From Prasinococcaceae sp. CCMP 1430 (taxonomy: Eukaryota > Plantae > Prasinodermophyta), in contig RQSC01000030.1 of the NCBI GenBank assembly GCA_013416795.1, forward strand, positions 51,637-85,264: DNA of 33,628 nucleotides, read 5' to 3'. This document shows, piece after piece, positions 4,089 to 33,628 of the stretch. Every line of letters starts with the position of its first letter. Position 1 is the first letter of the stretch. Made by a program: the position numbers and the translations under genes. Under the pieces are notes generated by a model. It was not told the origin of the DNA, made no database searches, and saw only the letters and a list, made by a program, of their open reading frames with translations.

Positions 4089-4245
4089 CTTTCCCCCCCA
4101 AACTCCAATTCGGGTCACGTCGCAACACGCACCTCCACCCCATCCAAAAACACCATCCCAATAAACCCTAATCACAACCGCAACCCCATCGAACGGCGAC
4201 GGGGGGGGCGCCGAATCTTCCGGCCCGCGCGCGCCGCCGCGCCCG

Positions 4246-4412
4246 TTGGCGACGCGCCCCTTGGTTGGAAGTGAGGGGGCCCCGCCCTGGGGATTGGGTT
4301 TTGATGTTTGGGGGTAAAAGAAGGGTTTAGATGCGATTGGCGACGCCACGCGCCCCTTGGTTGGAAGTGCGGGAGCCCCGCTGGGGGATTGGGTTGTGAT
4401 GTTTGGGGGTAA
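4246..4412 (+). repeat. Two-copy imperfect direct repeat of about 72-76 bp (4246-4317, 4337-4412)
   Basis: Both copies read ttggcgac..gcgccccttggttggaagtg..ccccg..tggggattgggtt.tgatgtttgggggtaa. Confidence 0.9.
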
Positions 4413-4493
4413 GATTTTAGGGTTAGATTTTGCGGCGCCGAGCACGCGACTCGCCATCACGCGCCCGTTCGGGCGGACGCGCGGGTCAGGCCC

Positions 4494-4611
4494 ATGCGTT
4501 TTGATGCCAAGGCGGGTCCAAATCCAGACCCCAAATGGTACAGAACGCCTGACGGATGCGTTTTGATGGACTGCTGTACGAATGCGGGTCCAAACCCAGA
4601 CCCCAAATGGT
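4494..4611 (+). repeat. Two-copy imperfect direct repeat (4494-4539, 4556-4611)
   Basis: atgcgttttgatg...gcgggtccaaa(t/c)ccagaccccaaatggt occurs twice. Confidence 0.88.
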
Positions 4612-4979
4612 GCGTGACCACAAATCCCATCACTTCGGGTGCGTTCGTTGCGGGCGCTTTCGCGCGCGCGAAGGCGAGGACGAGTAGCCCGTGGGTACAT
4701 GTGATGTTACTTTGTGTGTTTTGATGTGGCCTTATCCGCGGGTGGCTGAGAGACGCCGCGCGCGCGCGCGCCACGCGTGCGTGCGGGGGCGCGCGGGGGC
4801 GGNNNNNNNNNNNNNNNNNNNNNNNNNNNNNNNNNNNNNNNNNNNNNNNNNNNNNNNNNNNNNNNNNNNNNNNNNNCGCGCAAGCGCCGGCCCCCCTCGC
4901 TTTCGCTGACGCGGAGGCGGCCTACGGCGCACCGTCCCGCCGGCGCCCGCGCGCGCGCGTGCCGCGTGGCCGGCTGCAG

Positions 4980-5228
4980 AGTACAAGGGCTCCAAGTGGA
5001 ACTTCGCGACGCTGCTCGGCGTGCTCTTCATCGCGACGCCGCTCGCTGGGCTCGCTTTCGCGTACTTCTCCTACGGCGTGGTGCGTCCAGGCGCCCGTCG
5101 CCTGTCGCACGTCGCGCGTGTGCGAGCTCGCGCGTGCACGACCGCCTGCGCGCGACTGAGCGCGCGTACTGACCAGCCCCTCCGCCCTTCCATCTCCCTA
5201 CGCGCGCGCGCCTCAGCTGTGGGGTTGA
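4980..5228 (+). CDS. 3' exons of a small single-TM protein of unknown function (exons 4980-5080, 5217-5228): ..YKGSKWNFATLLGVLFIATPLAGLAFAYFSYGV|LWG*; 5' exon(s) probably in gap 4803-4876
   Basis: Branch GCTGAC near 4905 and CAG acceptor 4977-4979; donor GTGCGT 5081; branch ACTGAC 5168; CAG acceptor ending 5216; GC3-rich codons; hydrophobic helix. Confidence 0.7.
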
Positions 5229-5367
5229 GCGGTAACGCCACCGCCCTTGAAGTCCATTTTCGGCCCTTCGGACTTTCGCGATCGTTCCGCGGGCGGCGCG
5301 CGCGCCGCGCTCGCGTGTGCGCGATGTGAGCGCCCCGCGACGCGGCACAGCTTACAACCGCGCGCCC

Positions 5368-7248
5368 CTATGCGTCTCCGCCCGCCGTCGCCCACTTGCG
5401 CTTGAGCGAGATGAAGCTGAGCTGCGCCTCAACCTCAAGCGAGGCGAGCTTCTTGACCGCCGGGCGCAGCTGCTCCATGTGCGCGTTCGCTTCCTGCAAT
5501 GAGGCGTGCGCACGCGTGCGCACGGGCATGTGTGCGTGAGCGACTCCTCGGCGCTGCGCCCGGCGCTCGCGCACCAGCCTGAATGCGCGCACAAAGTCGC
5601 ACACGCGCGTGCATGCGCGTGGGAGAGGACGCACCTTGGAGAAACCGCCTCCCCTTGCCTGACCGTACACGGTGGTTCCCCCGGCGCCATCGGCCCCACC
5701 GCCCTCCGCGCCGCCGCCCACGGCGCCCGCGAGGCCCGCCGGGAGCTCCATGCCCGCACCCATGCGCTCCACGCGCCGCTGGAGGCGGTCTTCGACAGCT
5801 TTGAGAAGCGCACGCTCGTCCTGCCAGATGGTGTGCTTCTGGATGTCGTGCTTCGCGGGCTTGGGCGTCGTGAGCCACGGCTTGTATCCCTGTGCGCGCG
5901 CGTGCAAATGCGCGGCACGCGCGCGTTCGTGTCAGCGTCGGCGGCCGCACGCCATCACCTCAAGAGGGCGTACTCCGGGCACCCTCATATTAGGAATACT
6001 GACAGTGATTGCTGTATCAACACGACCGACAGGCGGTCCTTCAGGCAGTACGAATAATCTGTTGAATCACAGGACGCCAATGCGCGCGCGAGAGAGAGCG
6101 CGCGTCCGCGCTCCAGCGGCGCGCTCACCTTCTTTGAGCAGTACCACACGCGCTCCGGCTCGGTGGCGACGAAGCTCACCGCGAGGCCCATGCAGTCGGC
6201 GCGGCCGACGCGGCCGATGCGGTGCACGTAGTCCTCCGACTTGTCGGGCAGCGTCATGTTGATGACAAACGGCAGCCCGCTGACGTCGATGCCGCGCGCG
6301 GCCACGTCGGTGGCGATGAGCAGGCGGAAGGCGCCGCTCTTGAAGCCCTCGAGGTTGCGCCGCCGCTCGTGCATGTCGCGCGCGCCGGCGAGCACCGCGC
6401 AGCTGTAGCGACTCTCCGGGCCGCTCTCGCGCTGCCCGGAGAACTTGGACGCCGCGCCGCCCGCCGCCATGAGGAACTTCTCCAGGTTGTCGCAGTCGTG
6501 GTTGGTGCGGCAGAAGACAATGGCCTGCTCGATCTTGAGCGCGTCGACGAGCCGCAGCAGCATGCGCGGCTTGAGGCGCTTCACCGCCTCGCTCCAGCAC
6601 TCCCTGGACGCGCTGCCCACGCCGACGTCGTCCCACGCGTGGCAGCCGTCCGTGGGCACGGCGGGCTCGCTCTGCAGCCAGCTGCGGTCCTCCTTCGGGT
6701 CAACGCTCACCACCACGTGGTCGACCGCCTCGGGCACGGCGTCCTTGCCCTTGAGGTCCACCCACGTGGGGTTTTCGGTGAGCTCGCCCGCGAGCTTCCT
6801 CACGTCCGGCGAGTGCAGCGTCGCCGAGAACATGAGCGTCTGCAGGCGGTGCGTGCCCGTGCCGCGCTTGGGCAGCCTGTTGAAGAGCTTGCGGATGTCG
6901 TCGGCGTTGCCCGTGTCAAGCAGCCGGTCGGCCTCGTCGAGCACGAAGAAGCGCACCGCGCTCACGTCGAGCTTGCCCTGGCGGATCCAGTCGGCCACGC
7001 AGCGCGGCGTGCCCACCACCACGTCCACGCCCTCCTCCAGCTGCCGCGCCTGCTTCTTGTGGTCGATGCCGCCCACAAACAGCCCCGCGCGCAGCTCGGG
7101 CGCCACCATGTACCGCTTGTACTGCTCGATGCACTGGTAGACCTGCTCGGCGAGGTCACGCGCGGGCTCGAGGATGATGGCGAGCGGCTTGGTGCCCCCC
7201 GCGGCCGCCTCCGCCGCCGCGGCGGCCTCGTCGGCGGCCGCGTCGCGC
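5368..7248 (-). CDS. DDX1: DEAD-box RNA helicase, DDX1 orthologue-like; exons (gap)7248-6129, 5889-5635, 5493-5368; N-terminus in gap 7249-7757
   Basis: LEPARDLAEQ, LDEADRLL, FSATLHS, VDLKGKDAVPEAVDHVVV, IVFCRTNHDCDNLE, TDVAARGID, NMTLPDKSEDYVHRIGRVGRADCMGLAVSFV, VWYC. The VDLKG, CDNLE and GRVGRA-x-x-MGLA segments are DDX1-specific as I recall them. GT-AG introns 6128-5890 and 5634-5494 restore the frame. Confidence 0.9.
5980..6076 (-). ncRNA. Candidate intronic box C/D snoRNA in the DDX1 intron
   Basis: AT-richer block on the host sense strand: C-like GTGATT (6070-6065), D' CTGA, GACCG/CGGTC hairpin, C'-like GTGTTGA, D-like ATGA (5988-5985), and a terminal stem cgtcc/gggtg with two G-U pairs; boxes C and D are non-canonical. 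Confidence 0.3.
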
Positions 7249-12531: not shown

Positions 12532-15204
12532 ATGCCCACCCACAGTCTCGCAGGGNCGCAGCGACGAGGCGAGGCGCCGCCACAGCGGGAACGAACCCAA
12601 AATGCGACCACCAGCACGACGGCGCCGTCCGACGAGGAGGAGGCACGGTGCGCTTGCGTGCTGGGAGCGTGCACGCATCGCGGGGCCGGCGAGTCGCCCA
12701 AGCCGCGCGCGCCAAAGCCGTCGGTGTCGGATGGCGGGGCCGCGGTGGCGGCCGCCGCCGCCGCGGCGAGCTCCCCGTCGGCGTTCCCCGCGGGGAAACG
12801 TGGCATCCACAAGGCGAGCTGCTCGTGCGTGATTTGCCGGACGCGCGCGGAGAAGGCGAGGCGCGACGCCGCAGGCGAGGTGCGGCCGCCCGCGCTTCGA
12901 CGGCCGCGCGTGCGACAGCGCGGCGCGGGCGGCACCGCCTCGCCGCGGCGCTCGAAGGCGGACAGGGAGCGCAAGGAGCGCTCCGATGCTGTGTCTACTG
13001 CGGCCGCTGCGCTCGGCGTGTCGCCGTACGAAGACCCGCTGCAGGCGGTGGCTGCCGCAGAGCTCGCGTCCGCGCTTGCCGATACCCAGGCGCGCGCACA
13101 TACTGCAGAGGCAGCCGAGGCTGTCATTATGCGCCTGCAGGCGGTAGGCGCGCTCGACGGCGAGGTGGTGGAGTATCGGACGCCCGTGCCGCCGAGGGGC
13201 CTCGGCATGGGCGACGCTGCGGGGGCCGTGCGCGCGCGGCCGCTGCATCCGCCGCGCGGCACGCTCGAGGCGGGCGGCGGTGTGCGATGTCCGTGCGCGC
13301 GCTGTGCGACGCGCGCGGCTGCTGTCGCCGCCGGCGGCGGCGCCAGCGCGGGTGGAGGCAACGGCATCGGCGGAGGGATAGGCGGCGTGGTGTCGCTCGC
13401 GGAGATGGCCGCGCACTGCGGCGGCGGCCTTGGCGACAAGCGCCACTGCGTCGACTCGCTCTACCTGAGCGCCAGCGGCATCTCCCTCAGGCAGCACGTC
13501 GCCAACATGCGAGCGGTCGCGAGCAATGGCGGTGCGCATTCGCCGCAGGTGCCGCCCGGCGACGGCTCGGGTGGCTCGGGCGCCGCGGCCAGCGGCACGC
13601 CGCTGCGGCTGGCCACGCCGCGCCCGACAGCGCAAGGCAACAGCTCGAGGCGCGATCCCTTTGTCGAGAGCGTAGGCTCTGACATTGCGGAGAACGAGCA
13701 GCTGCGGTACGTGGACTGCACGAGCGGCCGCACGCTTCTCGAGGGCTGCCGGCGCGGCATCGGCATCCTGTGCGGTTGCTGCTCGCGCATCGTGACCCCG
13801 TCCACTTTCGAGGCACACGCGCACACCCGCGCGGGAGGCGCGCGTCTGCGCGCGGCGTATGACTGCATCATCTGCGAGGACGGGCGCTCGCTGCGCCAGG
13901 TGGTGGCGGACAGGGAGCGGCGGCTGGGGAAGAGTGGCACGGGGGCGGCGGCCGCCGCCTCCGCGGCAGCCGCGCGCGCGCGCGCGCCGGTGCGAGGCGC
14001 TCGCAGCGGCTCGCGGTCGCGCGGGCGACCTCGCAAGGATCGCCAGGCTGCCGGCAAGGTCAGCGATGGCAAGTCGCTCCCGGGGCTGGTCGAGCGCTGC
14101 CGGCGGCTGGCGGCCGACCTGGACATCGTGCAGGGCGGCTGCGTGCTGTGCCGCGCGTCCGACTTTGACCTGGACTCGTTCGGCCCGCGCACCATGATGG
14201 TGTGCGACCAGTGCGAGCGCGAGTTTCACGTGGGCTGCCTGTCGCGCTTCGGGCGCGCGGACCTCAAGGCGCTGCCCGAGGGCGAGTGGTTCTGCTCGGC
14301 GGACTGCGCGGCGATCAGCGCGTCGCTGCAGGCGCAGGTGGAGGCCGACGTCGGCACACAGAGCGTGCTGCCAGGCGACAGCCGCTGGGCGGAGCACACC
14401 TTCACCGTGCTGCGCGGGACCAGCGACGCGGGCGAGGCCGGCGCGCTCGCGCCCAACCCCGCGCGGGAGAAGATCCTTTCGGCGGCGCTCCGCATCATCA
14501 CGTCCTCGTTCGACCCCATCACCGATCTGAGCTCGGGCAAGGACCTCTTGCCGCTCATGGTGTACTCGCGCTCGCTGTCGGACCATGACTTCACGAACAT
14601 GATGTGCTTCGTGGTCAGCCACAGGGGCAAGCCGGTGTGCGCGGCGACTGTGCGCGTGTTCGGCCGGCGGCTCGCGGAGATGCCCCTGGTCGCCACCGAC
14701 GTGCGGGCCCGCCGCCAGGGCCACTGCCGCGCGCTGGTGCTGGCGGTCGAGCGAGTGCTTGCCGCCGCGGGCGTGGAAAAGCTCGGGCTCCCCGCGGCTC
14801 CCACGGCGGTCGGCACGTGGGTGCACGGCTTCGGCTTCAGCGAGATGTCGCTGGAGGAGCGCAAGTTCGCGCGCTCGGAGCTCCGCATGATGCACTTCCC
14901 GGGCTCGACGCTCCTCGCCAAGGACGTGCGCATGCCGCAGCCCGTCGCCGCCTCGCCCATGCCGAACAAAACCCTGCTCGGCGCCAGCGGCGGTGCGAGC
15001 GGGGCGCGGCCCGCGTCGGCACGCGCGCACGCGCACGCCGAGCCGCAGCCGGTCGACAGCGACTCGGACGGCCACTACTCCGACGCCGAGACCGATCCCG
15101 AGGGCGACAGCAGCGGAGGATCCCTCGTGGGGTGGGGGGACGACCCCTCCTTCCGCAGCGCCGACGCGCCGTCCGACACCGACGGAAGCGACGACGACTA
15201 CTGA
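12532..15204 (+). CDS. IDM1/ROS4-like plant-type chromatin protein: two Jas/Tify-binding-like Cys/His domains, PHD finger, GNAT acetyltransferase; start codon uncertain
   Basis: RCPCARC..SLAEMAAHCGG..SLYLSASGISL and ILCGCCSRIVTPSTFEAHA..IICEDGRSL; PHD CVLC..FGPRTMMVCDQCEREFHVGCL..LPEGEWFCSADC; GNAT SFDPITD..GKDLLPLMVY..VCAATVRVFGRRLAEMPLVAT..RRQGHCRAL..LPAAPTAVGTWVHGFGF. Confidence 0.9.
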   Translation: MPTHSLAGXQRRGEAPPQRERTQNATTSTTAPSDEEEARCACVLGACTHRGAGESPKPRAPKPSVSDGGAAVAAAAAAASSPSAFPAGKRGIHKASCSCVICRTRAEKARRDAAGEVRPPALRRPRVRQRGAGGTASPRRSKADRERKERSDAVSTAAAALGVSPYEDPLQAVAAAELASALADTQARAHTAEAAEAVIMRLQAVGALDGEVVEYRTPVPPRGLGMGDAAGAVRARPLHPPRGTLEAGGGVRCPCARCATRAAAVAAGGGASAGGGNGIGGGIGGVVSLAEMAAHCGGGLGDKRHCVDSLYLSASGISLRQHVANMRAVASNGGAHSPQVPPGDGSGGSGAAASGTPLRLATPRPTAQGNSSRRDPFVESVGSDIAENEQLRYVDCTSGRTLLEGCRRGIGILCGCCSRIVTPSTFEAHAHTRAGGARLRAAYDCIICEDGRSLRQVVADRERRLGKSGTGAAAAASAAAARARAPVRGARSGSRSRGRPRKDRQAAGKVSDGKSLPGLVERCRRLAADLDIVQGGCVLCRASDFDLDSFGPRTMMVCDQCEREFHVGCLSRFGRADLKALPEGEWFCSADCAAISASLQAQVEADVGTQSVLPGDSRWAEHTFTVLRGTSDAGEAGALAPNPAREKILSAALRIITSSFDPITDLSSGKDLLPLMVYSRSLSDHDFTNMMCFVVSHRGKPVCAATVRVFGRRLAEMPLVATDVRARRQGHCRALVLAVERVLAAAGVEKLGLPAAPTAVGTWVHGFGFSEMSLEERKFARSELRMMHFPGSTLLAKDVRMPQPVAASPMPNKTLLGASGGASGARPASARAHAHAEPQPVDSDSDGHYSDAETDPEGDSSGGSLVGWGDDPSFRSADAPSDTDGSDDDY

Positions 15205-21221: not shown

Positions 21222-21638
21222 CGTCGCCCGCCGGAGACGCCCGCCCGCGCCTGCGCGCNNNNNNNNNNNNNNNNNNNNNNNNNNNNNNNNNNNNNNNNNN
21301 NNNNNNNNNNNNNNNNNNNNNNNNNNNNNNNNNNNNNNNNNNNNNNNNNNNNNNNNNNNNNNNNNNNNNNNNNNNNNNNNNNNNNNNNNNNNNNNNNNNN
21401 NNNNNNNNNNNNNNNNNNNNNNNNNNNNNNNNNNNNNNNNNNNNNNNNNNNNNNNNNNNNNNNNNNNNNNNNNNNNNNNNNNNNNNNNNNNNNNNNNNNN
21501 NNNNNNNNNNNNNNNNNNNNCGCGATTTGGGGGGATGAGCGAGCGCTGATCAGCGCGCGCCACACCCGCGACGCGCCAGGCGGCGCTCCTCGCCCTCTCC
21601 TGCCTGCTGCTGCGCGATCGGCGGCGCGAGGGGGCGGG

Positions 21639-22299
21639 ATGGCGTGCTCTAGGTCGTCGACGGCGATGGCCGCGCCCGCGCGCGGCGCGGCGGCGCCGGC
21701 GGGTGGCGCGGCGGCCATGGAGGCGGCCCACGTCGCCGAGGCGGACGAGCTCCTGCGCGGTCTGAGAGAGAAAGTGCGCGCCATGGAGGCCGTGCACAAG
21801 TCGGTCGTGCGAATCGCTGCGCAGGCGGGCGCGCGCACACGCGAGCTCGGGCCGGGCAGAGCGGGAAAGGCCAAAGGCAAGGAGGGCGGCGGCGGCGGCG
21901 GCAGCAGCGAGCGCATCACCATGGCGACGCTGGGCGCGCAGCTGGCCGCACTCGCCTCTGAGGCCGAGAGTTCCTACGGTCGCGAGTGCGCGCTCGCGTC
22001 GGCCGCAGTCCAAGCCGCCGCTGCGCCCGCGGCGTGGGATGCGGCAGACGGTGGCGAGGCTGCGCTGGAGTCATTGGGCGCGCTGCTCGCGGCGCAACCG
22101 AATGTGGACGCCAGCCTCGAAGGGAGCCTACAGCTCAGGTGCGAGCTGCGCGGACACGCGCGAGCGCTGCTCGCCCGCGCGCCTCGCCCGCGCGCGCTTG
22201 CGCGCGCGCCGCTGACGCCGTGCGCTCGGCCGTGCAACAAGGCTCGACGGACTGCGAGAGATGCTCGATTGGGCCAGCACGAGCTCGCGCGCCATCTAG
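21639..22299 (+). CDS. Small helical protein, possibly of the C1orf109/AFG2-interacting (CK2S) family; exons 21639-22138, 22242-22299
   Basis: Protein-like frame with ESSYGRECALASAAV..LESLGALLAAQPNVD, recalling the plant family C-terminus (Y-x-x-E-x-x-L-K..L-x-x-LL-x-x-QPNI) from memory; intron GTGCGA..GCTGAC..AAG 22139-22241. The gene is likely, the family uncertain. Confidence 0.55.
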
Positions 22300-22593
22300 C
22301 GAACGAGCGCCATCGCTGCGACGCGCGAGGCGCGCGCTGGCCGGCCGGGCAAGGTTTCGCTCGACGGCGCTGCTCTAGCGGCGCTGCGCTCGAGCGCCCG
22401 CGGGGGCCTCCCGCGCTCCATCCCATCCCGACCCCCCGCGCGAGAGCGCGCAGGCAGTGGCCACTTGTTGTATCATACGTGGACTGTACGGCATATGCGT
22501 CCATCGCCGCCGCCCGCGCGCCCGCCCACGCGCGCGCGCGCGCGCGCGCTCCTTCAGCGCCCGGGGTAGCGAGCTGTCGCACGCCGCGGATGC

Positions 22594-23205
22594 TCAGCGG
22601 CCGTTGCCGAGGCCGAGAAACCAGAAGAGCGAGGGCATGCCCGGCGCCGGGGCGCGCGCGGCGTCCTGTCCGTATACGGACACCTGGGCGTGGGATGGGG
22701 TGAACAGGAAGATGCCGTCGCCGACGTTCTCGACGTGGCCGCCCAGCGCGATCGTCGAGCCCGCGAGGAAGTCCACCGCGCGCTGCGCCTCGATCGGGTC
22801 GGCGAAGCCGCGCGTGGAGAACACGAGCGCCTTGCCCGCGCGCAGCTCCTCGGTGGCCGCGTCCCACACCTGCTCGAAGCTCTCCGGCTCGAGGCGCATC
22901 ATGGCGTAGTACTCCGAGTGCTCCGAGTGGTAGCTCTGCTCGGGGCCCTGCGTCACGTCGAGCATGGCCGGCGCCGCGTAGCGGGCACCCGTGGCGTGCT
23001 GCGCGTGCTGCGCGGGCGCGTGCTGCGCCGCGAGCGCGGTCGCGCCGCCCAGCAGCGCGAAGCTCGTTCGGCGACGGGTGCACGAGCCCGCCGCGCGGCC
23101 GCCCGCCGCGCAGTGGCAGCAGCACCCCCTCGACCGCGCCCGACGCAGCTCTATCCGCGCCCCGCAGCGGGGGGGGGGGAAGGAGGGGGGCGTCCAGGGT
23201 GGCAC
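22594..23205 (-). CDS. sepF: SepF (YlmF/Cdv2) cell-division protein homologue with N-terminal extension; core 22890-22678; true start unresolved (track start is GTG, first in-frame ATG at 22965)
   Basis: EPESFEQ..LRAGKALVF..DPIEAQRAVDFLAGSTIALGGHVENVGDGIFLFTPSHAQVS matches the SepF core (EP-x-SF..AQR-x-VDF-x-x-G-x-x-x-A-x-x-G-H..-x-G-x-x-IFLFTP-x-x-V-x-VS); near-100% GC3 host-like codons. Confidence 0.9.
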   Translation of the reverse strand: MPPWTPPSFPPPRCGARIELRRARSRGCCCHCAAGGRAAGSCTRRRTSFALLGGATALAAQHAPAQHAQHATGARYAAPAMLDVTQGPEQSYHSEHSEYYAMMRLEPESFEQVWDAATEELRAGKALVFSTRGFADPIEAQRAVDFLAGSTIALGGHVENVGDGIFLFTPSHAQVSVYGQDAARAPAPGMPSLFWFLGLGNGR

Positions 23206-24136
23206 CCAAACCCCACCCCAAACTTCCCTCCCATTTCACGGCAATCAAATACATCGCTCGCGTCGGCAAAGCGCCGCACACAACACCATTCCCCTCATCA
23301 CATCCCCGCGCGCATCGAATCCACGCGCTCCAAACATGACCTTCTGCGTTTTACCTTTGGGTACGTCGATGCATGCGGGCGGAGTACCCCGGTGCGCGTT
23401 GGATGATCCTGGTACGATCCAAAGCAGACCCCGTCTTTGCGGGTGCTCGAACCGGTTGTTCCGCGGGTTTCGACCGGGGTCACGTACGCCCGGACGAGGG
23501 TTTGGTTCGCAGGTTCAATCCGGGGGGGATCTCGCACCCGTGGAGATCTCGGATCGCGCGGGCAGCGGATAACAGCACTCCCTCCCTTCTGTCCCGGTCT
23601 GAGCCCCGCCCATCCGGGGAAAACCTCCCAACGCGAACGCACACACCGGGTCTATCGCCCGGGCGCACCCGGGGGACGCGCCCGATTGCCCGGGGATGCG
23701 GAGGCTCCGACGAGCCAGGCCAGTCGGCGTGGGTGGATTCGATGATGCTGTCACACCACGAGTTATGAGTATCTCCCGTGGGTATGTTTGAGGTGAATGT
23801 AGATGTGGTATTTTGATGGCGCTCGGGGGGCCGGGGGGGACGGCGAAACGGGCCTCGAACGGACGCGCGCGCGCAGGCGCGCGCGCTCCCCCCTCCACAC
23901 ACCCGCTCCCCCCACCCTTCCCCCCCCCCTGCGCGCCACACCACACGCGCACTCCCACCACTCCCAACACCGCCACATACGCACCGCACACACGTTTCTC
24001 TGTCTCGCGCGCGCTCGCGCCCCGCCCGCGCGCGCGCGCGCGCGAATAATTTTCGAATTCGCGCGCCGCCGGACGCGCGGACGCGTTCCCGCCAAAAAAA
24101 AGAAAATAAAAAGAAAAAGAAAAAGAAAAAATGGGT

Positions 24137-24408
24137 GGAAGTCCGTCCGACCGTACGGCGAATGGCCGAATGCCCAAAAAAGAAAAAAGAAAAAAGAAAA
24201 AGAAAAAGTGGGGGGAGGTCCTTCGGACCGTATGTATTGCGAATGGCCAAATGCCAAAAAATGAAAAAGAAAAAGAAAAGAAAAAGGAAAAGGAAGGGGA
24301 GGTCCGTCCGACCGTATGTACGGCGGATGGCCGAATGCCAAAAAAGAAAAAAAGAAAAAGAAAAAAGAAAAAGTGGCGGGAGGTCCGACAGACCGTACGG
24401 CGAATGCC
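24137..24408 (+). repeat. Four-copy tandem repeat of about 80 bp: conserved core ggaggtccgtccgaccgta(tgta)cggcgaatggccgaatgcc separated by (GAAAAA)n tracts
   Basis: Cores at 24137-24175, 24214-24255, 24298-24339, 24379-24408; periods 77, 84, 81. Confidence 0.92.
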
Positions 24409-24594
24409 GCGCGTCGGTCTCGAATCAACGCATGATAGTGCTTTCCCGTGGGGCGCGTACACGCGCGCGCGCGACTCGCATTGCCGCCACGCGCCGCAGA
24501 GCGGAGCCCATCAGATCGCATCGAGTGCGTGCCGTCGACTCGGGAGTGTTTGAGTTTCGATGCTTTGTTTGGGTGCGGGCTTCGGTTTCGGCGC

Positions 24595-24694
24595 GGCAGT
24601 GCGTTTTGATGCGGCGGCGTTCCCCGGCAGTGCGTTTTGATGCGGCGGCGTTCCCCCGCGCGCGCGCGCGCGCGCGCGCGCGCGCGCGCGCGCG
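24595..24694 (+). repeat. Exact 31-bp tandem duplication (24595-24625, 24626-24656) followed by a pure (CG)19 tract (24657-24694)
   Basis: ggcagtgcgttttgatgcggcggcgttcccc twice, then 38 alternating C/G bases. Confidence 0.95.
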
Positions 24695-24749
24695 TTTGAA
24701 CCGCGCGCAGGCGCAGGCGCAGGGCGGGGCGGGGCCGCGGAAGGCCCCT

Positions 24750-24799
24750 GGGCGGGGGCAAGGGCCAGGGCCAGGGCCAGGGCCAGGGCAGGGCAGGGG
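24750..24799 (+). repeat. (GGGCCA)n/(GGGCA)n G-tract repeat with G-quadruplex consensus
   Basis: At least 8 GGG runs separated by 1-3 nt. Confidence 0.7.
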
Positions 24800-25165
24800 T
24801 GGCCCCGAGCCCCCACTCCCGTGTCCGCGCCACGGTCGCGCCACCTGGCGCGATCCCACACCCACCCACACACACACTCGCGCGCCACACACCTTCCTGT
24901 GGGGAGGCCTCCCCACCACCACCACCTGGCGCGCCTCCGCTCCGGGGCGCGCCACACGGACGGCGGCGGCGTGCCCGCGCGCACGCGCGCCGGGAGCCGC
25001 CCGGCCAGGCGCGGTCGGAGCGGCTGCGCTGCCTCGAGCTCCCTAGGGTTGGCCCGCTCCCGGCTCGGGCGCGCCGCGCCGCCGACGGCTGCCCAGCCCG
25101 CGTTGCGCGCGTGCGCGAGAAAGCGAGAGCGTGGCAGGGTTGCTGACGCGGCGCGCCGCGCGCAG

Positions 25166-25444
25166 AGTTTCCGCCCGGCTTCAACCCGTCGTCGGTGAAG
25201 CTGGCGCTCGACGGCGGGGCGCGGACGGCGCTGACGCGCGCCGACGGCGGCTTCGCCTTCGACGACGTGCTGCCGGGCGTCTACCTCCTCGAAGCGCACG
25301 CGGTGGGGTACACGTTCCCGCAGCTGCGCGTCGAGGTGACGCCGTCCTCCGCGGACGGCGTGGTGCGGTGGGCGACGGCGGCCACCAAGGTTCGCGCGCG
25401 CCCACCCACACATGCACACGACTTCATCACACACACACACACAT

Positions 25445-25480
<36 letters not shown>

Positions 25481-27552
25481 ACACGCACATGCACACGCAC
25501 ACGCAAACTCGCGCACACGCGCCTGGTCGGCTCGGTCCCGCATAGCGCGGCGCCGCGCGCCGCCCGCGCCTCCGCCGCGGCTGACCTCACCCCCCCCCAG
25601 CCGCCGCGCGGCGCGGCTCTGGGCGCGGGCGCGGGCGCCAGCGTGGCGCGCATGCACCTCATGGGCGAGGTCGTGGGCTGCCGCGGCTTCCCGGCGGGAA
25701 AGGCCTACTGCGCGGAGTGGTGGCTTGCAGCGGGATCCGAGTGGGCGCTCGAGGCGGGCGAGGTGCGCGGCCGCACGCAGGCGGCGTTCAGCGGGCCCGC
25801 CGACGTCGCGGCGCCGCAACGCGGCGCGCTGTGCGCGTGGGGCCACCCCATTCAGGTGTGCTACGTCACGCCGACGATGCAGGGCTGGCCGAAGCTGTGC
25901 GTGGCCATCCGCAGCGTCGATCCCGACGGCGGGCTGTGGCCGACGCCGGCGTCGGGCACGGAGGCGCCCGTGGCGTACGGCGTGGCGCCCCTCCCGCAGA
26001 CCCCCGGCGAGCACGACGTGGAGATCCAGTGCTGGCAGCCGTGCGACCGGAGCACGCGCGCCTCGGATGAGGCCTTCGCCTTCTTCACGGGCCTGCGCCC
26101 GGAGCTCAACGACGCCAACACGGCCCTTGTGGCCGACCGCGCGGGCGCCTTCGCCCGCGGCATGGTGACGCACGGCGTTGGCACGGTCGTCGCGCGCGTG
26201 ACCGTGCTCACGCGCGACATCGAGAACGCGCGCATGTTTGCCGCCGCGCCGTGGCACCGTGCGAAGGGCGCGGTCGCCACGCGCCCCGCGGGCGACGCTG
26301 ACGCGGACAGCGACAGCGATGGCGAGGTGCGCGTGCCCCCCGGACTCAGCCTGGACGGCCCGATGGACGACCGTGAGCGCGCGAGGCGCGAGGCGCTCTT
26401 CGAGGCGCGAGCGCTCCGCGTGGCGAGCGACGCCTCCATCACTGGACCTCCGGACATCGTCATCCACCCGACCAGCGCCACGGTCCCTGCGGGCACCCTG
26501 CTCACGCTGCGAGTGGCCGCCGGCGGGCAGCCGCCTCTCGCGTATCAGTGGGAGCGCGACGGGCAGGTGCTCGAGGGCCAGACCGAGCGCTTCATGCGCA
26601 TCAAGGTAGGTCGCGCCCGCGTGCGCGCCCCTCTGCTTTCGTGCGCTGCTGCGCGTGCACTGACGCCTGCGCTCTGCGCGAATGCTCTCGGCCGCAACAG
26701 GTACGCCGCATCGGCGAATACACGTGCGTCGTGCGAAATCTGCTGGGTGCGGTGCGCTCCAAGGGCGCCAAGGTGGCCCTCAGCGCGGCCGCGGGCGACG
26801 AGGGCGTCTTCGCGCGGCTCAACCGCCTGCTGGCCAATTCCGAGAGGCGCATTCGCCAGCTCTTCGGCAAGTACGACGCGGACGAGACTGGCACGCTGGA
26901 GCGCGACGAGTTGCGCAATTTCATGCGCGAGCTGCTGCCAGGCGCGACGCGCCCCGAGTTGCGCTACCTGCAGGCGCTCATGGACGTGGACGGTGATGGC
27001 TCGCTGTCCTTCCTGGAGCTCGTGCAGTCCATCCGCACCTGCCGCACGCTCGCCGACGCCGCGTCGGGCAGGCGTGGGGTGGGGCAGACCAACGCGCGCT
27101 TCAGCCGCGTCATGGGCAAGCTAGTTGCATCCGTAGCAGGGACAGGCGGGGGCTCGCAGGACCTCAAGGTGCGCGATGGGGGCGCACGCGCGCCGGGCGC
27201 TCTGCGCGCTGCGGCGCGCGCACCAGAGCTAACGCGCCGCCGCCCGTGCTCCGTGCGACGCTCGTTGGCGCCTCCCCAGGCCGTTTTCGATAGGTATGAC
27301 AAGGACAACTCAGGCACGCTCGACCAGCGCGAGCTCTCGAAGCTGTTGCGCGAGGTCACGAAGCCAGAAAACAACGACGAGCTCCGCTTCCTCATCGCGA
27401 GCGTGCTCCACACCGCCGACGTCGACGGCAACGGCGAGATCGGCTTCGGCGAGCTGGAGCGCGTCGTGCGGCGCATCACGCTCAAGGACGTCCAGTTGCC
27501 CCTGCCCGAGGGCAGGCAGCCCGTCGAGCGGGCGTACGGGCCCGTCGCGTGA
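25166..27552 (+). CDS. Multidomain protein: EMC7-like beta-sandwich + B9 (B9D2-like) domain + Ig I-set-like domain + four EF-hands; exons 25166-25389, 25601-26605, 26701-27168, 27280-27552; 5' exon/ATG not found (internal ATG at 25652)
   Basis: EMC7-like SVKLALDGGARTALTRADGGFAFDDVLPGVYLLEAHAVGYTFPQLRVEV; B9 MHLMGEVVGCRGF..RGRTQ..WGHPI..QGWPKL..AYGVAPLPQTPGEH..WQP..FFTGLRPEL; Ig PPDIVIHP..YQWERDG..|..GEYTCVVRNLLGAVRS; EF loops DADETGTLERDE, DVDGDGSLSFLE, DKDNSGTLDQRE, DVDGNGEIGFGE; all three introns are GT-AG with branch motifs and keep frame. Confidence 0.85.
25425..25520. repeat. (CA)n microsatellite within intron 25390-25600
   Basis: Visible CA run. Confidence 0.9.
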
Positions 27553-28145
27553 GGGCGCGGCGACGCATCGCCTCGCGCCCGCCAGCGCAGGGCCTGCCGC
27601 GGCCGCGGCCTCCATATAACAAAGGCCGGACGGTGGCCACTCAGACTCAGACCCCGCCCAGTCCCTGCATCTGCACCCGCATCCCTCCCGTCTCTCCTCG
27701 TTCTGAAAGACACGAGCGCGCGTGCTTCGAAACCCTACCGGACATGCGTACGTACAGTGCGTGTGCAGTACAGTACAGTGTGCAGTACAAGTCCACATGC
27801 ACTTGGCGAGGGGCGCGGGCACCGCACGTCACGAGGGCCAGCAGGAGCGAATCTAAGCCCAAATCCAAATCTGAAGTCTGCTGCGGTTCGTGTGTTGGTC
27901 GCGAAGATATATAATTATTGCACCGTTGGTTGGTTTCGATCAGAATAACGAGCTCGAATTCAAAGGTTCCCCCCCAACCGACGCGCGGCCGTCGCAGCAG
28001 CGGCCGGCTTGACCGGCGCGCCCCACAGCGCGCGCGGGAGGCGAGGGAGGGGAAAGGCGAGGGGGAGGGGGGAGGCGAGGGGGCGTGGCTTGGACCCAGC
28101 CCTGCGTTGCGCCGCCACTGCCGTCTGCGGTCGCGGCGACGGGTG

Positions 28146-29426
28146 ATGGGCGGCGCGAGGGTCGCGCCGCTGGAAGGCGGCGCGGCGCTGCCGTCGGACG
28201 AGACGCAGACGTCCGCGGTGGCGGCGCCGGCGATGGGCGGCGCGAAGGTTGCGCCATCCGACAGCGGCGCGGCGCGACCATCGGACAAAGCGCTCCGGAC
28301 CCTCCGCACCATGCGCACCCTGCGCACCATGTGGACCTTGCAGTCGCTGGCCCCGGTGGGTCCGCCCATCGCGCTGCGCAAGAAGGGCACGATGCGATCG
28401 CTCGCTGCCGGGGGCAACGGCGCCGAGGAGGACGTGGCGTTCGACGTTGACGAGCATTCGCTGCTAACCAACCTCTGTCGAGCGTCATACCTGGACCCCG
28501 ATTCGGCGCAATATTGGGCTGAGGGGCCCAAAGGCGACGGATGCTACTGTGACTTTGGCGGCGAGGCCGACCCGCCATGTCTTCGCGGCGCACTGAAGTT
28601 CGGTTTGGGCAGCGGCGTGGAGCACGAGCTGCTTGAGTTCCACAACCACGAGCGCTCGGACACGCAGGCATTTTTCGCAGCGCCGGTAGCGGCGCCCTCC
28701 GAGCTCGTGATCAGCACGCGCGGCACCAACGGCCTCACTGACGCTTTTACCGACTTGAAGTTCGCCAAGACGCTCTGGGAGCCCGAGGAGGACAGCTACG
28801 AGGAGTTCGAGGCGTGCTTCGCGTGCTGCCGCGAGACGGCCTGCGGCAGCGGCACCCCAAATGTTCATTGGGGCGCGTACAAATCGTTCCTGACCCTCAA
28901 GGACGCGCTCAAGCGGCACGGTACCTTCGCACGCAAGGGTGGACTCACGAAGATCACCGTGTGTGGCCACTCGCTAGGTGGCATTGTGGCGACGTTTGCT
29001 TTTGCGTACTTGCTGCAGCTCAACGGGCCGCGGCGACTCGCCGAGGCGGGGGTCAAGTGCACGCTCTACACAATAGGTTCGGGCAGGCCGGGCAACTCGG
29101 GCTTCAAGGCGCATCTGGAGGCGCTGCTGAAACCATTGCAAGACAAGGGCCTGGGGCGGATCTTGCGGCTCGTGAACGACTTGGACGTCATCCCGCGCCT
29201 GCCTCCCTTTTCACGCTTCGGCTACACGCACGTCGGTGAGCTGTACATGTTCACGGACTCTAAGCGCGAAGATCCGCCCCATCCGGGCAAGGCGCTCCTG
29301 TTCGTGGGCGGACAGCAAGACAAGGCCAATACCTCCACGCTCGAGTCGATCAAGCGGTGTGGCGAGCTCATGGGCGACCACTGTGGCCTTGCGTACCTCA
29401 AGTGCGTCCAGGACCAGCGCCGGTAG
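28146..29426 (+). CDS. Class-3 (fungal-type fold) lipase, intronless, with a duplicated N-terminal peptide
   Basis: VISTRGT lid/oxyanion region, VHWGAYKSF, VCGHSLGG nucleophile, YTIGSGRPGN, RLVNDLDVIPRLPP (acid), YTHVG, DHCGLAY (His); ATG 28146, TAG 29424-29426. Confidence 0.92.
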   Translation: MGGARVAPLEGGAALPSDETQTSAVAAPAMGGAKVAPSDSGAARPSDKALRTLRTMRTLRTMWTLQSLAPVGPPIALRKKGTMRSLAAGGNGAEEDVAFDVDEHSLLTNLCRASYLDPDSAQYWAEGPKGDGCYCDFGGEADPPCLRGALKFGLGSGVEHELLEFHNHERSDTQAFFAAPVAAPSELVISTRGTNGLTDAFTDLKFAKTLWEPEEDSYEEFEACFACCRETACGSGTPNVHWGAYKSFLTLKDALKRHGTFARKGGLTKITVCGHSLGGIVATFAFAYLLQLNGPRRLAEAGVKCTLYTIGSGRPGNSGFKAHLEALLKPLQDKGLGRILRLVNDLDVIPRLPPFSRFGYTHVGELYMFTDSKREDPPHPGKALLFVGGQQDKANTSTLESIKRCGELMGDHCGLAYLKCVQDQRR

Positions 29427-29631
29427 CGAGATCGGCGCGCTGGCCGCCGTGAGCGCTGGCCGCGTAGCTGCCGCGTGCCTCTCCCCGCGCGGCTACCCCT
29501 GCTCGACTCGCGCGAGACATCGACATCGAGGATTGCCGCCATCCGGGTCCATCGCCTCGCGAATGATATCAATGGTGCCATAGCAGTATGCAGCACTAGT
29601 CTATAGTAACAGCAGAGACGCGCGCGCGCAG

Positions 29632-32600
29632 TCACGAGAGGGTTCTCCACTGGAGGTGAAGATAGACGGTGCCTGCGCTGGAGCCATCCGCTGCTCGCAG
29701 GTCGAGCGCCACGTCGCCGCCCGAGCTCTGCGTGACATCCAGCAACGAGCTGCACGAGGCGCTGCCGATGTCGCGCCCGCCGCTGCGCGCGCAGATGGCG
29801 CCCGCCAGCCATGACCACGCTCCGGCCAACGCCCGGTCTGGTCGGTGGCGCACGAGCACGTGCAAGTTTTGCGACAGCTCCGTGCGCGTGATGTTGTTGA
29901 ATTGGAAGGTTTGCCGCCAGTAGCAGTTTGAGCCCTCGGCCGATTCGCTCTTGAAACGGTCGCTCGCCAGCGTCAGAACCACCTCCGGATTGAGCGACCT
30001 GTCAGGCACCCACGAGGAGCTCAGCCTCTTGCCACGCACGAGCTCCACGAAGAGCGTGCCACGCATCTCGCCGTCAGTCCTCGCAGGTGAGTCGCTTCGC
30101 GCTGCTCTGCTCGACACGAATGGCTTGAAGCTCGTCGCGAGCGTGACGCTGCCGTGCTTGACGCCCACAAGCCTGTGAGTACGGACCTCCCTGCCAATGG
30201 CTGGCGTGTCCTTGCCGATGACGCCAATGTCTACGGGAGTAATGCCCATGAAGTCCGAACCGCTCTTGATCGTCTCCTCGTCGATCATCTCACGCGGCGT
30301 GCACTTGCCGTACGGTAGGAAGCGCACGTCGCGGAGCACGGACTGGATGTTCTCCATGCTGCCGCCGGCACCCTTCAGCAACCTGCTGCGCTTGCTGCCC
30401 GCGGGTCCATCACGGTGCTTGCTCTCGTTTGTTGCTCCCTTCACCTTCGTGCCTGCGCGCCATTGCACGCGCCGCCTGATGGCGCGCGCTACCGCCGAGA
30501 CACTGCCCGCAATCTTTCGCGCAGCACGTGACCATGGTATGGTCGTAAGGTGATCGTATGCGTCGATCTCCTCCTTGGCAGCTGCCTCAGACACAAGCGC
30601 CTCGAGCTCTGCGCCTCGGTTGTACGCGGCGGTCCTCTCCAGTCGCTCGTACACTCCGCGCAGCCCACAGGCCGCAAGCGTGGAGCTGCACACAGCGCCT
30701 CCGACGTCTCGATCGAACACGCCCACCCACACTCGCAGCGCCCGCGAGCTCGCCGGGACCTCGAATGTGAGCCGCGCCCCTTTGTCGCTGCGTATGCCGT
30801 CGCCGCTGTGTTGTGAAGCGTCCCACCGCGGGTTTAGAGTGCGAGCCATGGTCTTCGTAGCTCGCGCTCGGCGCGCGTAGGGCGGTGCAACGCCAGCGCT
30901 GAGGCCCTCGGCGGCGTCGATCATCACGACCACGTACGGGTCACTCGAGCCTTTGAGCACATCGGTGATGATGAGGTCGGCGGCCGACATCACCTCGACC
31001 ACAAGCACGCCCGCGGCGGCCGCGGCCCGCCCGCCGATGAGTGCCGCCATGTCATCATCCGCGGGGTCCACCAGGGGCACATGCGCAAAGGCAGGCTCGC
31101 ACAAGGCGCGTCGCACGAGAGTGCGCATGAGGACGCGTTTGCACAGCCGCGCCCCTGGCAGGTCAAGCAGCGGCAAAGGTGGCAGCAGACCACACACGCG
31201 CACACCGACGCACGCGTCCACCGTCGGGTCCTCCAGCAGCGAAAGCGACACGCCGCCGACCACAGGAGGCGCGGCCAGCAGCGGGTGCAGGCGGATGCGC
31301 GCCTTTGCAATCAGCAAGACCTCGCTCACCTCCACACCACACGCCGCCAGGGGGTTGCCCAGCGGCGCAACCCGTACGCCCACCCGAAGGTCCCCCGCCA
31401 GCCGCAGCGCGACCTCAAGGCACACCTGCGCATGGGAGCCGCCGGAGGACCCCGTGCCAGACGGCGATGTGGACGCGTGCAGTGCCTCTACCGTCGGTGG
31501 GAGCTCACCCAACTCCACCGATAGCTGCGGTCTCAAAATCGCATCTGCGGCCGCGTCGTGCTCCATGCCCCGCATGAGGCTGACGAGGCCGAGATCGTTG
31601 AGGCGCCGCACCTCCGCCCGCACGGCGACACGAAGCAGCGGCCAAAGCGTGCAAATGATTTCATCCATCCAGTGCGCGCGCTCCCAAGCAGTGGAGGCCG
31701 TCCACGCGGGCAGCGCAGACGGTGCGATTGCGCGTGCGAGCGACGCAAGCTGTTGCGGCGACAGCGTGAGCGGTAGCATTGCAGCGTCGTGCGCGGCGAG
31801 CGCGCGGCCGAGGTGGAACTCGTCGGGGATGCTCAGAGCGCGCGCCACCCCGCGTGCGAGCGGACACGCCACCTCATTCTCGCGGCGCTGTCGGGCGTCT
31901 TTCGCTGGCGTGAGTGTCGATGCCAGCGAAGGCGGTGAAGGCGTCGATGTGTCCGGACGCGAGAGGCTCTTCGCTTTGGGCGAGTGCAGCACCTTGCCCG
32001 CGAATGTCGCCGTCGTCGAGCGCGGCGTCAGCGGTGGCGCTGCAGATGATACCATGCGCCGCGACGGCGAGCGCGGCGGCGTATCCTCCAGCATGCCCTC
32101 CCGCGAATCCTTCGGCAAGTCCTTGGCAATTAAGGGCGCGTAAAACGACTCCGTGGCGAGCTGGTGCTCGACGACCTCGTCGGCGGGTACCGCGGCCGTG
32201 GCTGTATACACGCAACGCATGTACACCTCGCCGCGGATCGAGCGCGACTGCCCTCGCGCGAGCCCCCGAACCCTCCCCATTATCTTGCCGGTACTGCCTG
32301 AGGGCGGCGTGAGGACGTACCAGCCCTCGACCTCCTTGCCCGGCTGCCTGGCCACGCCAGCCACGTCCAACCTCACAAATCCCAACAGGTCGTCGCGATT
32401 GAAACGATCCCAGTCAAACACGCGCACGACGAGCGCCTCCACGCTCGGGTTGAACACCGGGAAGGACGCTCGAAAGCGCCACTCGGGGTCCAGCGTTTGC
32501 GGGCACACCTCGGAGCGCATCGCGCCACGGTCGAGCGCGGCACGCCGCGAGTGGTGGGCGCGGCGGGACGTGAGCCCGGCTTCAAGGTACGGATCCGAAG

Positions 32601-33628
32601 TACCGCCGCGGTCAGAGGTTCGCAGGCCACGCGCGCGGTCCACGCGGATGTGCAGGTAGCCCAGTGGGTGCGTGGATAGCATGCGCGCGATGGCTTGCTC
32701 GCGCGACTTGGTGGTGCGGTCGAACACCACCGGAAGCACCTTCGGCGAGACGATCGTGTCGCGCACCACCTGGCGCAGCACGTGGCGAAGCGCCTCGTTT
32801 AGGCCGAAGAAGGCGTCCAAATGCACGCGCGGCAGCCCCGGCGCAGGCACCGCCGCGAGGTCATAATCGATTGCGGGCATCTCAGGGAAGGTCATGGACA
32901 GCCCGCCCACGAGCGGCAGCCGTGACAGGAGCGGCGCCAGCCGCACGCGTAGCGTGCCCTCGACCCGCAGGTTGGTCACGTGCACGGAGAGCGGCGCCAC
33001 GTTGGCGTATATGGCCGGACCGCGCACGCTGAAGGCAATCGATGGCTCGCCCCGCCAGCGCACCGACACGAAGAGCAACAACTCACCCTCTGACTCCACT
33101 CCGGCGCCCGCGTCCTCTGGGGCGCCCCCCTCCGCGCGCTCGGTGCGCCTCCCGTCCTTTCCCCCCTCTTTCCCGTCCGTCGCCGCGCTGGCCCCCACGA
33201 CTACGGTCTGCACGCCCGTCACCTGAGGCGGCACGGCGCCCAAGGAGAAGCTGTCGAGCCCCATGCGGCTCACGCCGCGCGGCCGCAGCTCGTGCAGCAT
33301 GGGCTCGATGAGCGCGCGAATGAGCGTGTTGAAGGTGGCGTCGACGGTGCCCCAGACGCTCGCGAGCGCCTCGGAGAGCCACTCGGCGCGCTCCGACTCT
33401 CCGAACTCGATGAAGGCGTTGAGCGGCGGCAGGTGCGGCGGCAGGTGCGGCGCTGCCGCTGCTGCGGCGCGCTCGAGCGCTTGCCGGCCCGCGCGGCGGA
33501 ACGCGTGCGTTGCGGCGGCGATGCGCACCCGACGCCTCCGTCGGCGTCGCGCCGCCCAGCGGCTGTGTGCGACCACCAGCGCGACCCATTGGATGCGGCG
33601 CGCGGCGCGCGCAAGGCCTCGCCGCGCG
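29632..33628 (-). CDS. Synaptotagmin/extended-synaptotagmin-like lipid-transfer protein, SMP-C2-SMP-C2-C2; reading frame stays open to the window end, so the N-terminus (probable membrane anchor) is outside
   Basis: SMP1 ERAEWL..VW..FSLGAVPP..GTLRVRLAPLL..VGGLSMTF (about 33393-32730); C2A SDRGGTSDPY..TLDPEW..VFDWDRFNRDDLLG (about 32667-32311); SMP2 ERAHWMDEII..LW..LGELPP..ARIRLHPLL..VGGVSLSL (about 31686-31070); C2B GSSDPY..TLNPRW..FDRD..DFMG; C2C near the C-terminus. Confidence 0.92.
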   Translation of the reverse strand, partial: ARRGLARAARRIQWVALVVAHSRWAARRRRRRRVRIAAATHAFRRAGRQALERAAAAAAPHLPPHLPPLNAFIEFGESERAEWLSEALASVWGTVDATFNTLIRALIEPMLHELRPRGVSRMGLDSFSLGAVPPQVTGVQTVVVGASAATDGKEGGKDGRRTERAEGGAPEDAGAGVESEGELLLFVSVRWRGEPSIAFSVRGPAIYANVAPLSVHVTNLRVEGTLRVRLAPLLSRLPLVGGLSMTFPEMPAIDYDLAAVPAPGLPRVHLDAFFGLNEALRHVLRQVVRDTIVSPKVLPVVFDRTTKSREQAIARMLSTHPLGYLHIRVDRARGLRTSDRGGTSDPYLEAGLTSRRAHHSRRAALDRGAMRSEVCPQTLDPEWRFRASFPVFNPSVEALVVRVFDWDRFNRDDLLGFVRLDVAGVARQPGKEVEGWYVLTPPSGSTGKIMGRVRGLARGQSRSIRGEVYMRCVYTATAAVPADEVVEHQLATESFYAPLIAKDLPKDSREGMLEDTPPRSPSRRMVSSAAPPLTPRSTTATFAGKVLHSPKAKSLSRPDTSTPSPPSLASTLTPAKDARQRRENEVACPLARGVARALSIPDEFHLGRALAAHDAAMLPLTLSPQQLASLARAIAPSALPAWTASTAWERAHWMDEIICTLWPLLRVAVRAEVRRLNDLGLVSLMRGMEHDAAADAILRPQLSVELGELPPTVEALHASTSPSGTGSSGGSHAQVCLEVALRLAGDLRVGVRVAPLGNPLAACGVEVSEVLLIAKARIRLHPLLAAPPVVGGVSLSLLEDPTVDACVGVRVCGLLPPLPLLDLPGARLCKRVLMRTLVRRALCEPAFAHVPLVDPADDDMAALIGGRAAAAAGVLVVEVMSAADLIITDVLKGSSDPYVVVMIDAAEGLSAGVAPPYARRARATKTMARTLNPRWDASQHSGDGIRSDKGARLTFEVPASSRALRVWVGVFDRDVGGAVCSSTLAACGLRGVYERLERTAAYNRGAELEALVSEAAAKEEIDAYDHLTTIPWSRAARKIAGSVSAVARAIRRRVQWRAGTKVKGATNESKHRDGPAGSKRSRLLKGAGGSMENIQSVLRDVRFLPYGKCTPREMIDEETIKSGSDFMGITPVDIGVIGKDTPAIGREVRTHRLVGVKHGSVTLATSFKPFVSSRAARSDSPARTDGEMRGTLFVELVRGKRLSSSWVPDRSLNPEVVLTLASDRFKSESAEGSNCYWRQTFQFNNITRTELSQNLHVLVRHRPDRALAGAWSWLAGAICARSGGRDIGSASCSSLLDVTQSSGGDVALDLRAADGSSAGTVYLHLQWRTLS

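Follow-up and report, generated by a model that had tools for sequence, protein, structure and literature searches.

The stretch of DNA analysed here, 33,628 nucleotides of a contig from Prasinococcaceae sp. CCMP 1430 and referred to below as the window, carries a nuclear gene for a SepF protein of the cyanobacterial type. We consider it probable that this gene encodes a functional SepF derived from the plastid ancestor, which would act in the stroma as a tether for FtsZ during a plastid division that is linked to peptidoglycan.

The minus-strand open reading frame at 22594-23205 comprises 203 codons. It is present as the preliminary description gave it, except that its 5′ end at 23205 is a merely mechanical GTG start and the first in-frame ATG (M81) lies at 22965. 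The minimal coding sequence from this ATG to the stop (22594..22965, minus strand) gives a protein of 123 aa (P0001); gene calls on two short metagenome contigs from Tara Oceans include an identical protein. Screening against Pfam matched ORF residues 105-175 (22681..22893, minus strand) to PF04472 (DUF552) with an E value of 4.7e-15 and 56 bits (cut-off 27), the alignment spanning profile positions 4-72 of 72; the NCBIfam profile search of the same frame gave no match. The segments EAQRAVDFLAG, LGGH and VGDGIFLFTP are all found in it. In parallel, sequence matches within the PDB were obtained to SepF from B. subtilis (3ZIH and 8HZQ, E 3e-7) and from C. glutamicum (6SAT). An AlphaFold2 model based on a 44-sequence alignment has a mean pLDDT of 77.8, with a core above 90 and disordered tails, and the top 22 Foldseek matches of this model in the PDB are all SepF or SepF-like structures, with a TM score of 0.88 to 3ZIH and of 0.90 to the SepF-FtsZ peptide complex 6SCS (rmsd 1.1-1.6 Å). 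With a significant Pfam match, the quoted segments in place and a SepF fold in the model, the SepF core recognised earlier from the letters alone is confirmed.

Within the 44-sequence SepF alignment, all six invariant and all six near-invariant columns are retained in the window SepF. The core is under purifying selection: its dN/dS relative to the SepF of an uncultured relative (Tara scaffold L004) is 0.41, a ratio in which the extreme GC3 probably lowers dS, and the three SNP positions in the core relative to the Tara contigs L001 and L002 are all synonymous.

The glycine G109 is required for dimer-dimer polymerisation of B. subtilis SepF. Its equivalent, taken from the alignment with the G109K structure 3ZII, is the G of DFLAG (G69 of P0001), which is invariant in the 44 SepFs. 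Residues of C. glutamicum SepF were mapped using the chain of 6SAT, for which residue 63 was taken as the first (PMC7118173). F131, a contact of the FtsZ C-terminal domain, corresponds to F86 of P0001 and is kept, and K125, also an FtsZ contact, corresponds to N80, the basic residue being replaced by Asn. Most green homologues have Ser, Ala or Asn at this site, and cyanobacteria and B. subtilis have Arg. For C. glutamicum SepF it has been reported that F131A alone cripples FtsZ binding, with K125E adding to the effect (PMC7118173). With F131 kept and the K125 equivalent replaced, FtsZ binding by the window SepF is plausible, perhaps with a changed specificity.

An exhaustive HMMER search of 1.84 billion cluster representatives returned 535 matches, with a small top group scoring far above the rest. 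On the evidence of these sequences the gene is not unique to the window alga and belongs to a small family in early-branching green algae. Homologues were identified in Chlorokybus atmophyticus and Mesostigma viride (both from EukProt), in Pycnococcus provasolii (GHP04784.1, named SepF in UniRef, and XRA99630.1) and in Pseudoscourfieldia marina (XRB14093.1), together with a full-length MMETSP transcript product of 233 aa (P0179) and homologues on marine contigs (P0031/P0181), whose adjoining genes carry ankyrin and zf-MYND domains. The SepF of the uncultured relative (P0028) is 71% identical to the window SepF and is found on at least 70 marine contigs, the longest of which is the scaffold L004 (8.4 kb, GC 69%). 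With a profile of the green-lineage proteins, these score 124-207 bits and the next score is 95 bits; the named matches at or below 95 bits are all cyanobacterial. When further chlorophyte homologues were sought with the Pycnococcus protein, the search returned only its own cluster. Likewise, these searches gave no SepF from other green algae that retain peptidoglycan, e.g. Micromonas, which implies that SepF is not obligatory for plastids of this kind. Three bacterial proteins may be mentioned in passing. A 903-aa protein of Serratia (P0034), considered as a multi-SepF protein, was rejected as it is actually a Big_1/invasin protein; a protein of an uncultured bacterium (P0040) joins a pair of SepF domains to a Ser/Thr protein kinase, and another of 440 aa (P0043, likewise from an uncultured bacterium) has two SepF domains. 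Both of the latter come from JGI/IMG and are unusual in their architecture.

In bacterial SepF, a linker of ~50 residues connects an amphipathic membrane peptide at the N-terminus to the core that binds FtsZ (PMC7118173). Orthologues of full length begin with a presequence, after which come a membrane helix, a linker of acidic character and finally the core. The presequence is basic and acid-poor and has a length of 33-84 aa; because it sits ahead of a helix that is extreme N-terminal in bacteria, it looks as a cleavable targeting peptide should. Four orthologues (L004, P0179, Mesostigma and Pycnococcus) have this presequence followed by a motif ending in FLF, which reads ..LMDTVHSFLFE in exon 1 of L004, ..SSFIDRINDFLFAEE in P0179, ..LLGRVHDFLFSED in Mesostigma and ..LSSLANFLFAPP in Pycnococcus. 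In alignments the motif falls on the N-terminal helix of cyanobacterial SepF, and the hydrophobic moments are close (0.65 in P0179 versus 0.63 in a cyanobacterial helix). An N-myristoylation start, MGG..FG in frame 1 as in P0031, was also considered and was rejected, the longer P0181 showing that this segment is internal.

At the opposite end of the protein, the C-terminal tail of the window SepF (PSLFWFLGLGNGR; 22597..22635, minus strand), which has a low pLDDT in the model, carries a motif of the green clade, P-[SG]-L-[FL]-x-F. This motif was found in 11 of the 336 SepF proteins collected, all of them from the green eukaryotic clade, and it is usually followed by basic residues. Its carriers include the window alga, L004, Mesostigma, Chlorokybus, P0179 and P0181, and among the 336 it is absent from Pycnococcus and from all non-green SepFs. 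An interpretation of the tail as an amphipathic helix was not upheld, as the moment is 0.60 in Mesostigma but 0.1-0.2 in the window alga, whose tail is hydrophobic and not amphipathic. The conservation of the motif across the deepest green split argues that it has a function, and membrane binding or the docking of a partner are possible roles. The form P-S-L-F-x-F bears a loose resemblance to P-x-F-L, the core of the peptide at the FtsZ C-terminus to which ARC6 binds.

The 5′ end of the window gene was examined in the light of these architectures. Upstream of M81 (22965) there is no in-frame ATG up to the stop at 23236-23238. The in-frame extension of 80 codons (22966..23205, minus strand) is rich in Arg, Ala and Ser, with 11 R+K and 1 D+E, and in composition it looks like a transit peptide. 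G or C occupies 74 of its 80 third codon positions compared with 122 of the 160 first and second positions (Fisher p 0.002), and in the next 460 nt beyond it, which served as a non-coding control, the GC content by codon position is flat. The extension is probably coding. Moreover, the homologous region in L004 is coding and runs on into exon 1. In view of the upstream codon bias and of this coding region in L004, the window protein very probably begins upstream of M81; a product translated from M81 onwards would lack both a transit peptide and an N-terminal membrane helix.

As for the start itself, a homopolymer of eleven C (23169..23179, minus strand) lies just inside the extension, and a one-base miscall within it, a speculative suggestion, would link the ATG at 23234 or that at 23254 to the SepF frame. 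A short 5′ exon is another possible source of the start. Searches for an exon encoding the presequence and membrane helix in 23150-25420, by tblastn and blastn with L004 exon 1 and the four orthologue motifs and by regular expressions, gave low-complexity matches only, and no N-terminal membrane helix was detected for the window species in this interval. Candidate GT...AG joins for a short intron near 23234-23254 were rejected, as they lead to a stop or to the wrong frame. The Tara contigs L001, L002 and L003, which diverge from the window at 23053, 23005 and 22980, respectively, with no AG acceptor at any of these points, are uninformative on the 5′ end because the three breakpoints differ and the sequences beyond them are mutually unrelated. 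In these contigs, unrelated 5′ parts (L001 1-136, L002 1-80 and L003 1-538) are joined to a window-type SepF of 99% identity, and the part from L001 encodes a dienelactone-hydrolase-like GFCFGG motif. Chimeric assembly at a repeat rich in GC is the most likely source of the junctions, although structural variation between strains is possible.

These features bear on the foremost alternative to a functional tether, namely that a real nuclear gene encodes a product which has ceased to tether the Z ring. The protein might be a relic whose partner or compartment has changed, for example a cytosolic protein translated from M81 or a SepF fold without FtsZ binding. Such an outcome would agree with a first ATG at M81 and with the lack of a detected N-terminal membrane helix in the window species, as well as with the Asn, Ser or Ala at the K125-equivalent site of most green homologues and with a new conserved C-terminal motif, which hints at a new partner. 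We nevertheless regard it as unlikely, since the codon bias extends in frame over the 80 codons upstream, four orthologues have a presequence and then the FLF motif, and the F131 and G109 equivalents are kept along with every invariant position of a core that is under purifying selection.

The ancestry of the protein was assessed from its motifs, its database matches and a phylogeny. All 80 of the named SepF loci from cyanobacteria have the heptad AQRAVDF. It occurs in 0 of the 17 non-cyanobacterial-type SepFs checked, nine of which have variants of it such as AKRIVDF and ARRIIDF. This agrees with the preliminary description, which took the segment EAQRAVDF to be the cyanobacterial version. 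Beyond the green group, the best database matches are free-living cyanobacteria with 43-49% identity over the core. When one genome was kept per bacterial species, the best 80 loci were cyanobacterial with one exception, on a MAG contig that bears the label Rhizobium; as its sequence groups with those of Pseudanabaenales, the contig was probably binned wrongly.

In a maximum likelihood tree of 48 sequences and 138 columns (LG+C20), from whose sampling the plastid sepF of glaucophytes is absent, the green sequences are recovered together as a single group (87/88), as they are in 100% of bootstrap trees, and the green and cyanobacterial SepFs form a clade (98/79) apart from the Firmicutes-type sequences. 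The window SepF pairs with L004, and Mesostigma is sister to Chlorokybus (96/72), as in the species tree. Pycnococcus and two other sequences are long branches, and with a short alignment the tree consequently does not fix the place of the green clade within the cyanobacteria. With this sampling, the phylogeny that had been proposed as a check groups the green clade with cyanobacteria, and the nesting among non-cyanobacterial bacteria that would have spoken against the idea was not seen. Together with the gap in the green profile scores, this joining of the green clade to cyanobacterial SepF supports the suspected cyanobacterial ancestry. The same tree contains a cluster from Thermosynechococcus (P0086), a 101-aa SepF-like protein annotated as Ycf50/DUF552, which has a long branch (2.64). 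It diverges first within the clade that unites cyanobacteria and greens (98/79) and so falls outside the main group of cyanobacterial SepFs; some cyanobacteria may thus have a second SepF type of divergent sequence.

The distribution and the tree fit one ancient endosymbiotic transfer before the split of Prasinodermophyta, Chlorophyta and Streptophyta, followed by many losses. Recent horizontal transfer into the lineage of the window alga alone, with a cyanobacterium or another bacterium as donor, might be read from the patchy occurrence of the gene among green algae and from the free-living cyanobacteria that are its best non-green matches. We judge it to be very improbable, as the homologues from three green phyla constitute one clade with shared derived motifs, in which the sister relationship of Mesostigma and Chlorokybus follows the species tree, and as a large interval in score (124-207 versus 95 bits) separates them from any bacterium; furthermore, the GC3 is fully host-like, and the gene of the uncultured relative has introns and a conserved synteny.

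The GC contents of the SepF core at codon positions 1, 2 and 3 are 0.69, 0.47 and 0.97, respectively. Neighbouring genes have a GC3 of 0.81-0.83, so that the bias noted previously as host-like is indeed present and goes even further in SepF; a genome GC of 69.8% has been reported for Prasinoderma coloniale (PMC7455551). There are seven N gaps in the window and the last ends at 21520, leaving 21521-33628 continuous, as had been stated. This gap-free stretch includes, besides SepF, a divergent B9-C2/Ig gene (25412..27124, plus strand; Pfam B9-C2 E 1e-30), which is its conserved syntenic partner, and two further genes with eukaryotic domains, a class-3 lipase gene (27918-29426, plus strand) and a gene with SMP and C2 domains (29632-33576, minus strand). 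On L004, SepF adjoins a divergent B9-C2/Ig/EF-hand gene (1164-2867) in the same arrangement as in the window. The L004 SepF consists of three exons (4092-4292, 4426-4776 and 5196-5426) joined in frame across two GT-AG introns. The first (GTGCGT...CAG) is 133 nt long; the second (GTGAGT...CAG), of 419 nt, splits the SepF core, and the window gene is uninterrupted there.

The gap-free eukaryotic neighbours, the host-like GC3 and, in the relative, the B9 synteny and the GT-AG introns show that the window SepF is a nuclear gene and not contamination. The strongest evidence comes from the uncultured relative, with its synteny and introns. Likewise, the earlier argument from introns against contamination holds good on a different basis, the introns in the SepF of this close relative and not those of the neighbours in the window. 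Bacterial contamination or an assembly chimera, which a draft assembly with seven N gaps and three short SepF-bearing metagenome contigs with unrelated 5′ ends might bring to mind, has a negligible probability given that no gap lies between SepF and the eukaryotic genes, that a GC3 of 0.97 is unlike that of any cyanobacterial match and that the SepF-B9 arrangement recurs on independent Tara scaffolds of the relative, with spliceosomal introns in SepF.

Several other features of the region were recorded. The spacer of ~2 kb between SepF and the B9 gene shows no coding periodicity and its GC content drops to 0.3-0.5, far under the genome average; it contains an A-rich tandem repeat (24096..24406), in which a unit of ~82 bp recurs in 3.9 copies, as well as runs of (CG)n at 24006-24044 and 24657-24694. 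B9-C2 proteins are of a ciliary transition-zone type, and one adjoins SepF both in the window and in the uncultured relative; Prasinoderma has been described as lacking flagella (PMC7455551). Elsewhere in the window, an ORF of 890 aa at 12532-15204 (plus strand) has IDM1_C, Tify-binding and PHD domains, the layout of a plant IDM1-type histone acetyltransferase.

According to the explanation that we favour, endosymbiotic gene transfer would have carried the gene from the plastid ancestor to the nucleus ahead of the divergence of the green lineages, and the gene would survive only in a few early-branching green algae. By analogy with bacterial SepF, the precursor would be imported into the chloroplast stroma by means of its N-terminal presequence, and the dimeric core would bind plastid FtsZ at its C-terminal peptide. 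A short segment of hydrophobic or amphipathic character, presumably the N-terminal FLF motif in the orthologues and possibly also the C-terminal PSLFxF tail, would hold the complex on the inner envelope membrane. The outcome would be a Z ring that is tethered and bundled in a plastid still making septal peptidoglycan. For the window SepF itself, we infer plastid import, FtsZ binding, membrane anchoring and peptidoglycan coupling by this analogy. All ten core enzymes of peptidoglycan synthesis have been reported in P. coloniale (PMC7455551), and ftsI and ftsW are encoded in some Prasinococcales plastid genomes (PMC4194372).

A nuclear SepF occurs in Prasinodermophyta and early Streptophyta as well as in one or more of the early lineages of chlorophytes, a distribution which suggests that the transfer predates the green radiation, and it would add a component to the ancestral plastid divisome of the green lineage. 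A broader proposal, for which our confidence is limited and which we advance tentatively, is that the last common ancestor of green plants had a nuclear SepF in a largely bacterial-type, peptidoglycan-coupled plastid divisome and that the PSLFxF tail was gained, to serve either for anchoring in the membrane a second time or for the docking of another division protein. If SepF acts as proposed, it would be a second tether of the Z ring alongside ARC6 in the window alga, Mesostigma, Chlorokybus and Pycnococcus. For plastids that have kept peptidoglycan, it could thus provide a handle on how the Z ring is tethered and how it is linked to synthesis of the septal wall, and its clade-specific C-terminal motif, a new feature of green SepF, is a defined element that can be tested.

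The suggestion that this plastid-division component might be undescribed agrees with the literature, in that no publication pairing SepF with a green alga as a nuclear gene was found in a search that covered the literature outside most subscription journals; the SepF match among publications on algae was the plastid-encoded sepF of Cyanophora. In reviews of plastid division, SepF appears solely as a gene encoded by the plastids of glaucophytes, and a publication of 2025 calls it lost in plastid evolution. The Pycnococcus protein has already been named SepF automatically in NCBI and UniRef.

Compared with known systems, the algal protein is closest to cyanobacterial SepF (Cdv2/YlmF of Synechocystis, Anabaena and Nostoc), with which it shares the core, the AQRAVDF heptad and 43-49% identity, and which provides its nearest prokaryotic relatives both in the profile search and in the tree. 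The algal orthologues also share the cyanobacterial layout of helix, acidic linker and core. Unlike its cyanobacterial counterparts, however, the algal gene is nuclear, with the codon bias of its host and with introns in relatives, and the full-length orthologues have a presequence before the helix and most of the family a clade-specific PSLFxF tail; furthermore, the cyanobacterial Arg at the K125-equivalent site is Asn in the window SepF.

The SepF of B. subtilis and C. glutamicum (3ZIH, 8HZQ, 6SAT and 6SCS) has the same fold (TM 0.88-0.90) and shares the G109 and F131 equivalents with the window protein. The identity is ~30%, the K125 equivalent is non-basic in the alga, which has the C-terminal motif in addition, and the N-terminal membrane helix of these bacterial proteins has no counterpart detected in the window species. 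In glaucophytes, sepF is encoded by the plastid (Cyanophora and others; PMC4015805, PMC6330054, bioRxiv 10.1101/109975) and likewise serves an organelle with peptidoglycan and a bacterial-type division apparatus (PMC4015805, PMC6330054). There the gene is still in the plastid genome and is not regulated by the cell cycle (PMC4015805), whereas that of the window alga has moved to the nucleus.

The job proposed for SepF, holding FtsZ at the inner envelope's stromal surface through its C-terminal peptide, is that of ARC6/Ftn2 (ZipN) (PMC4164004). ARC6, the established tether of FtsZ in green plastids, is an unrelated transmembrane protein of the J-domain-like type and is universal in green plastids; next to it, SepF would be an additional, ancestral tether that has been kept in a few lineages only.
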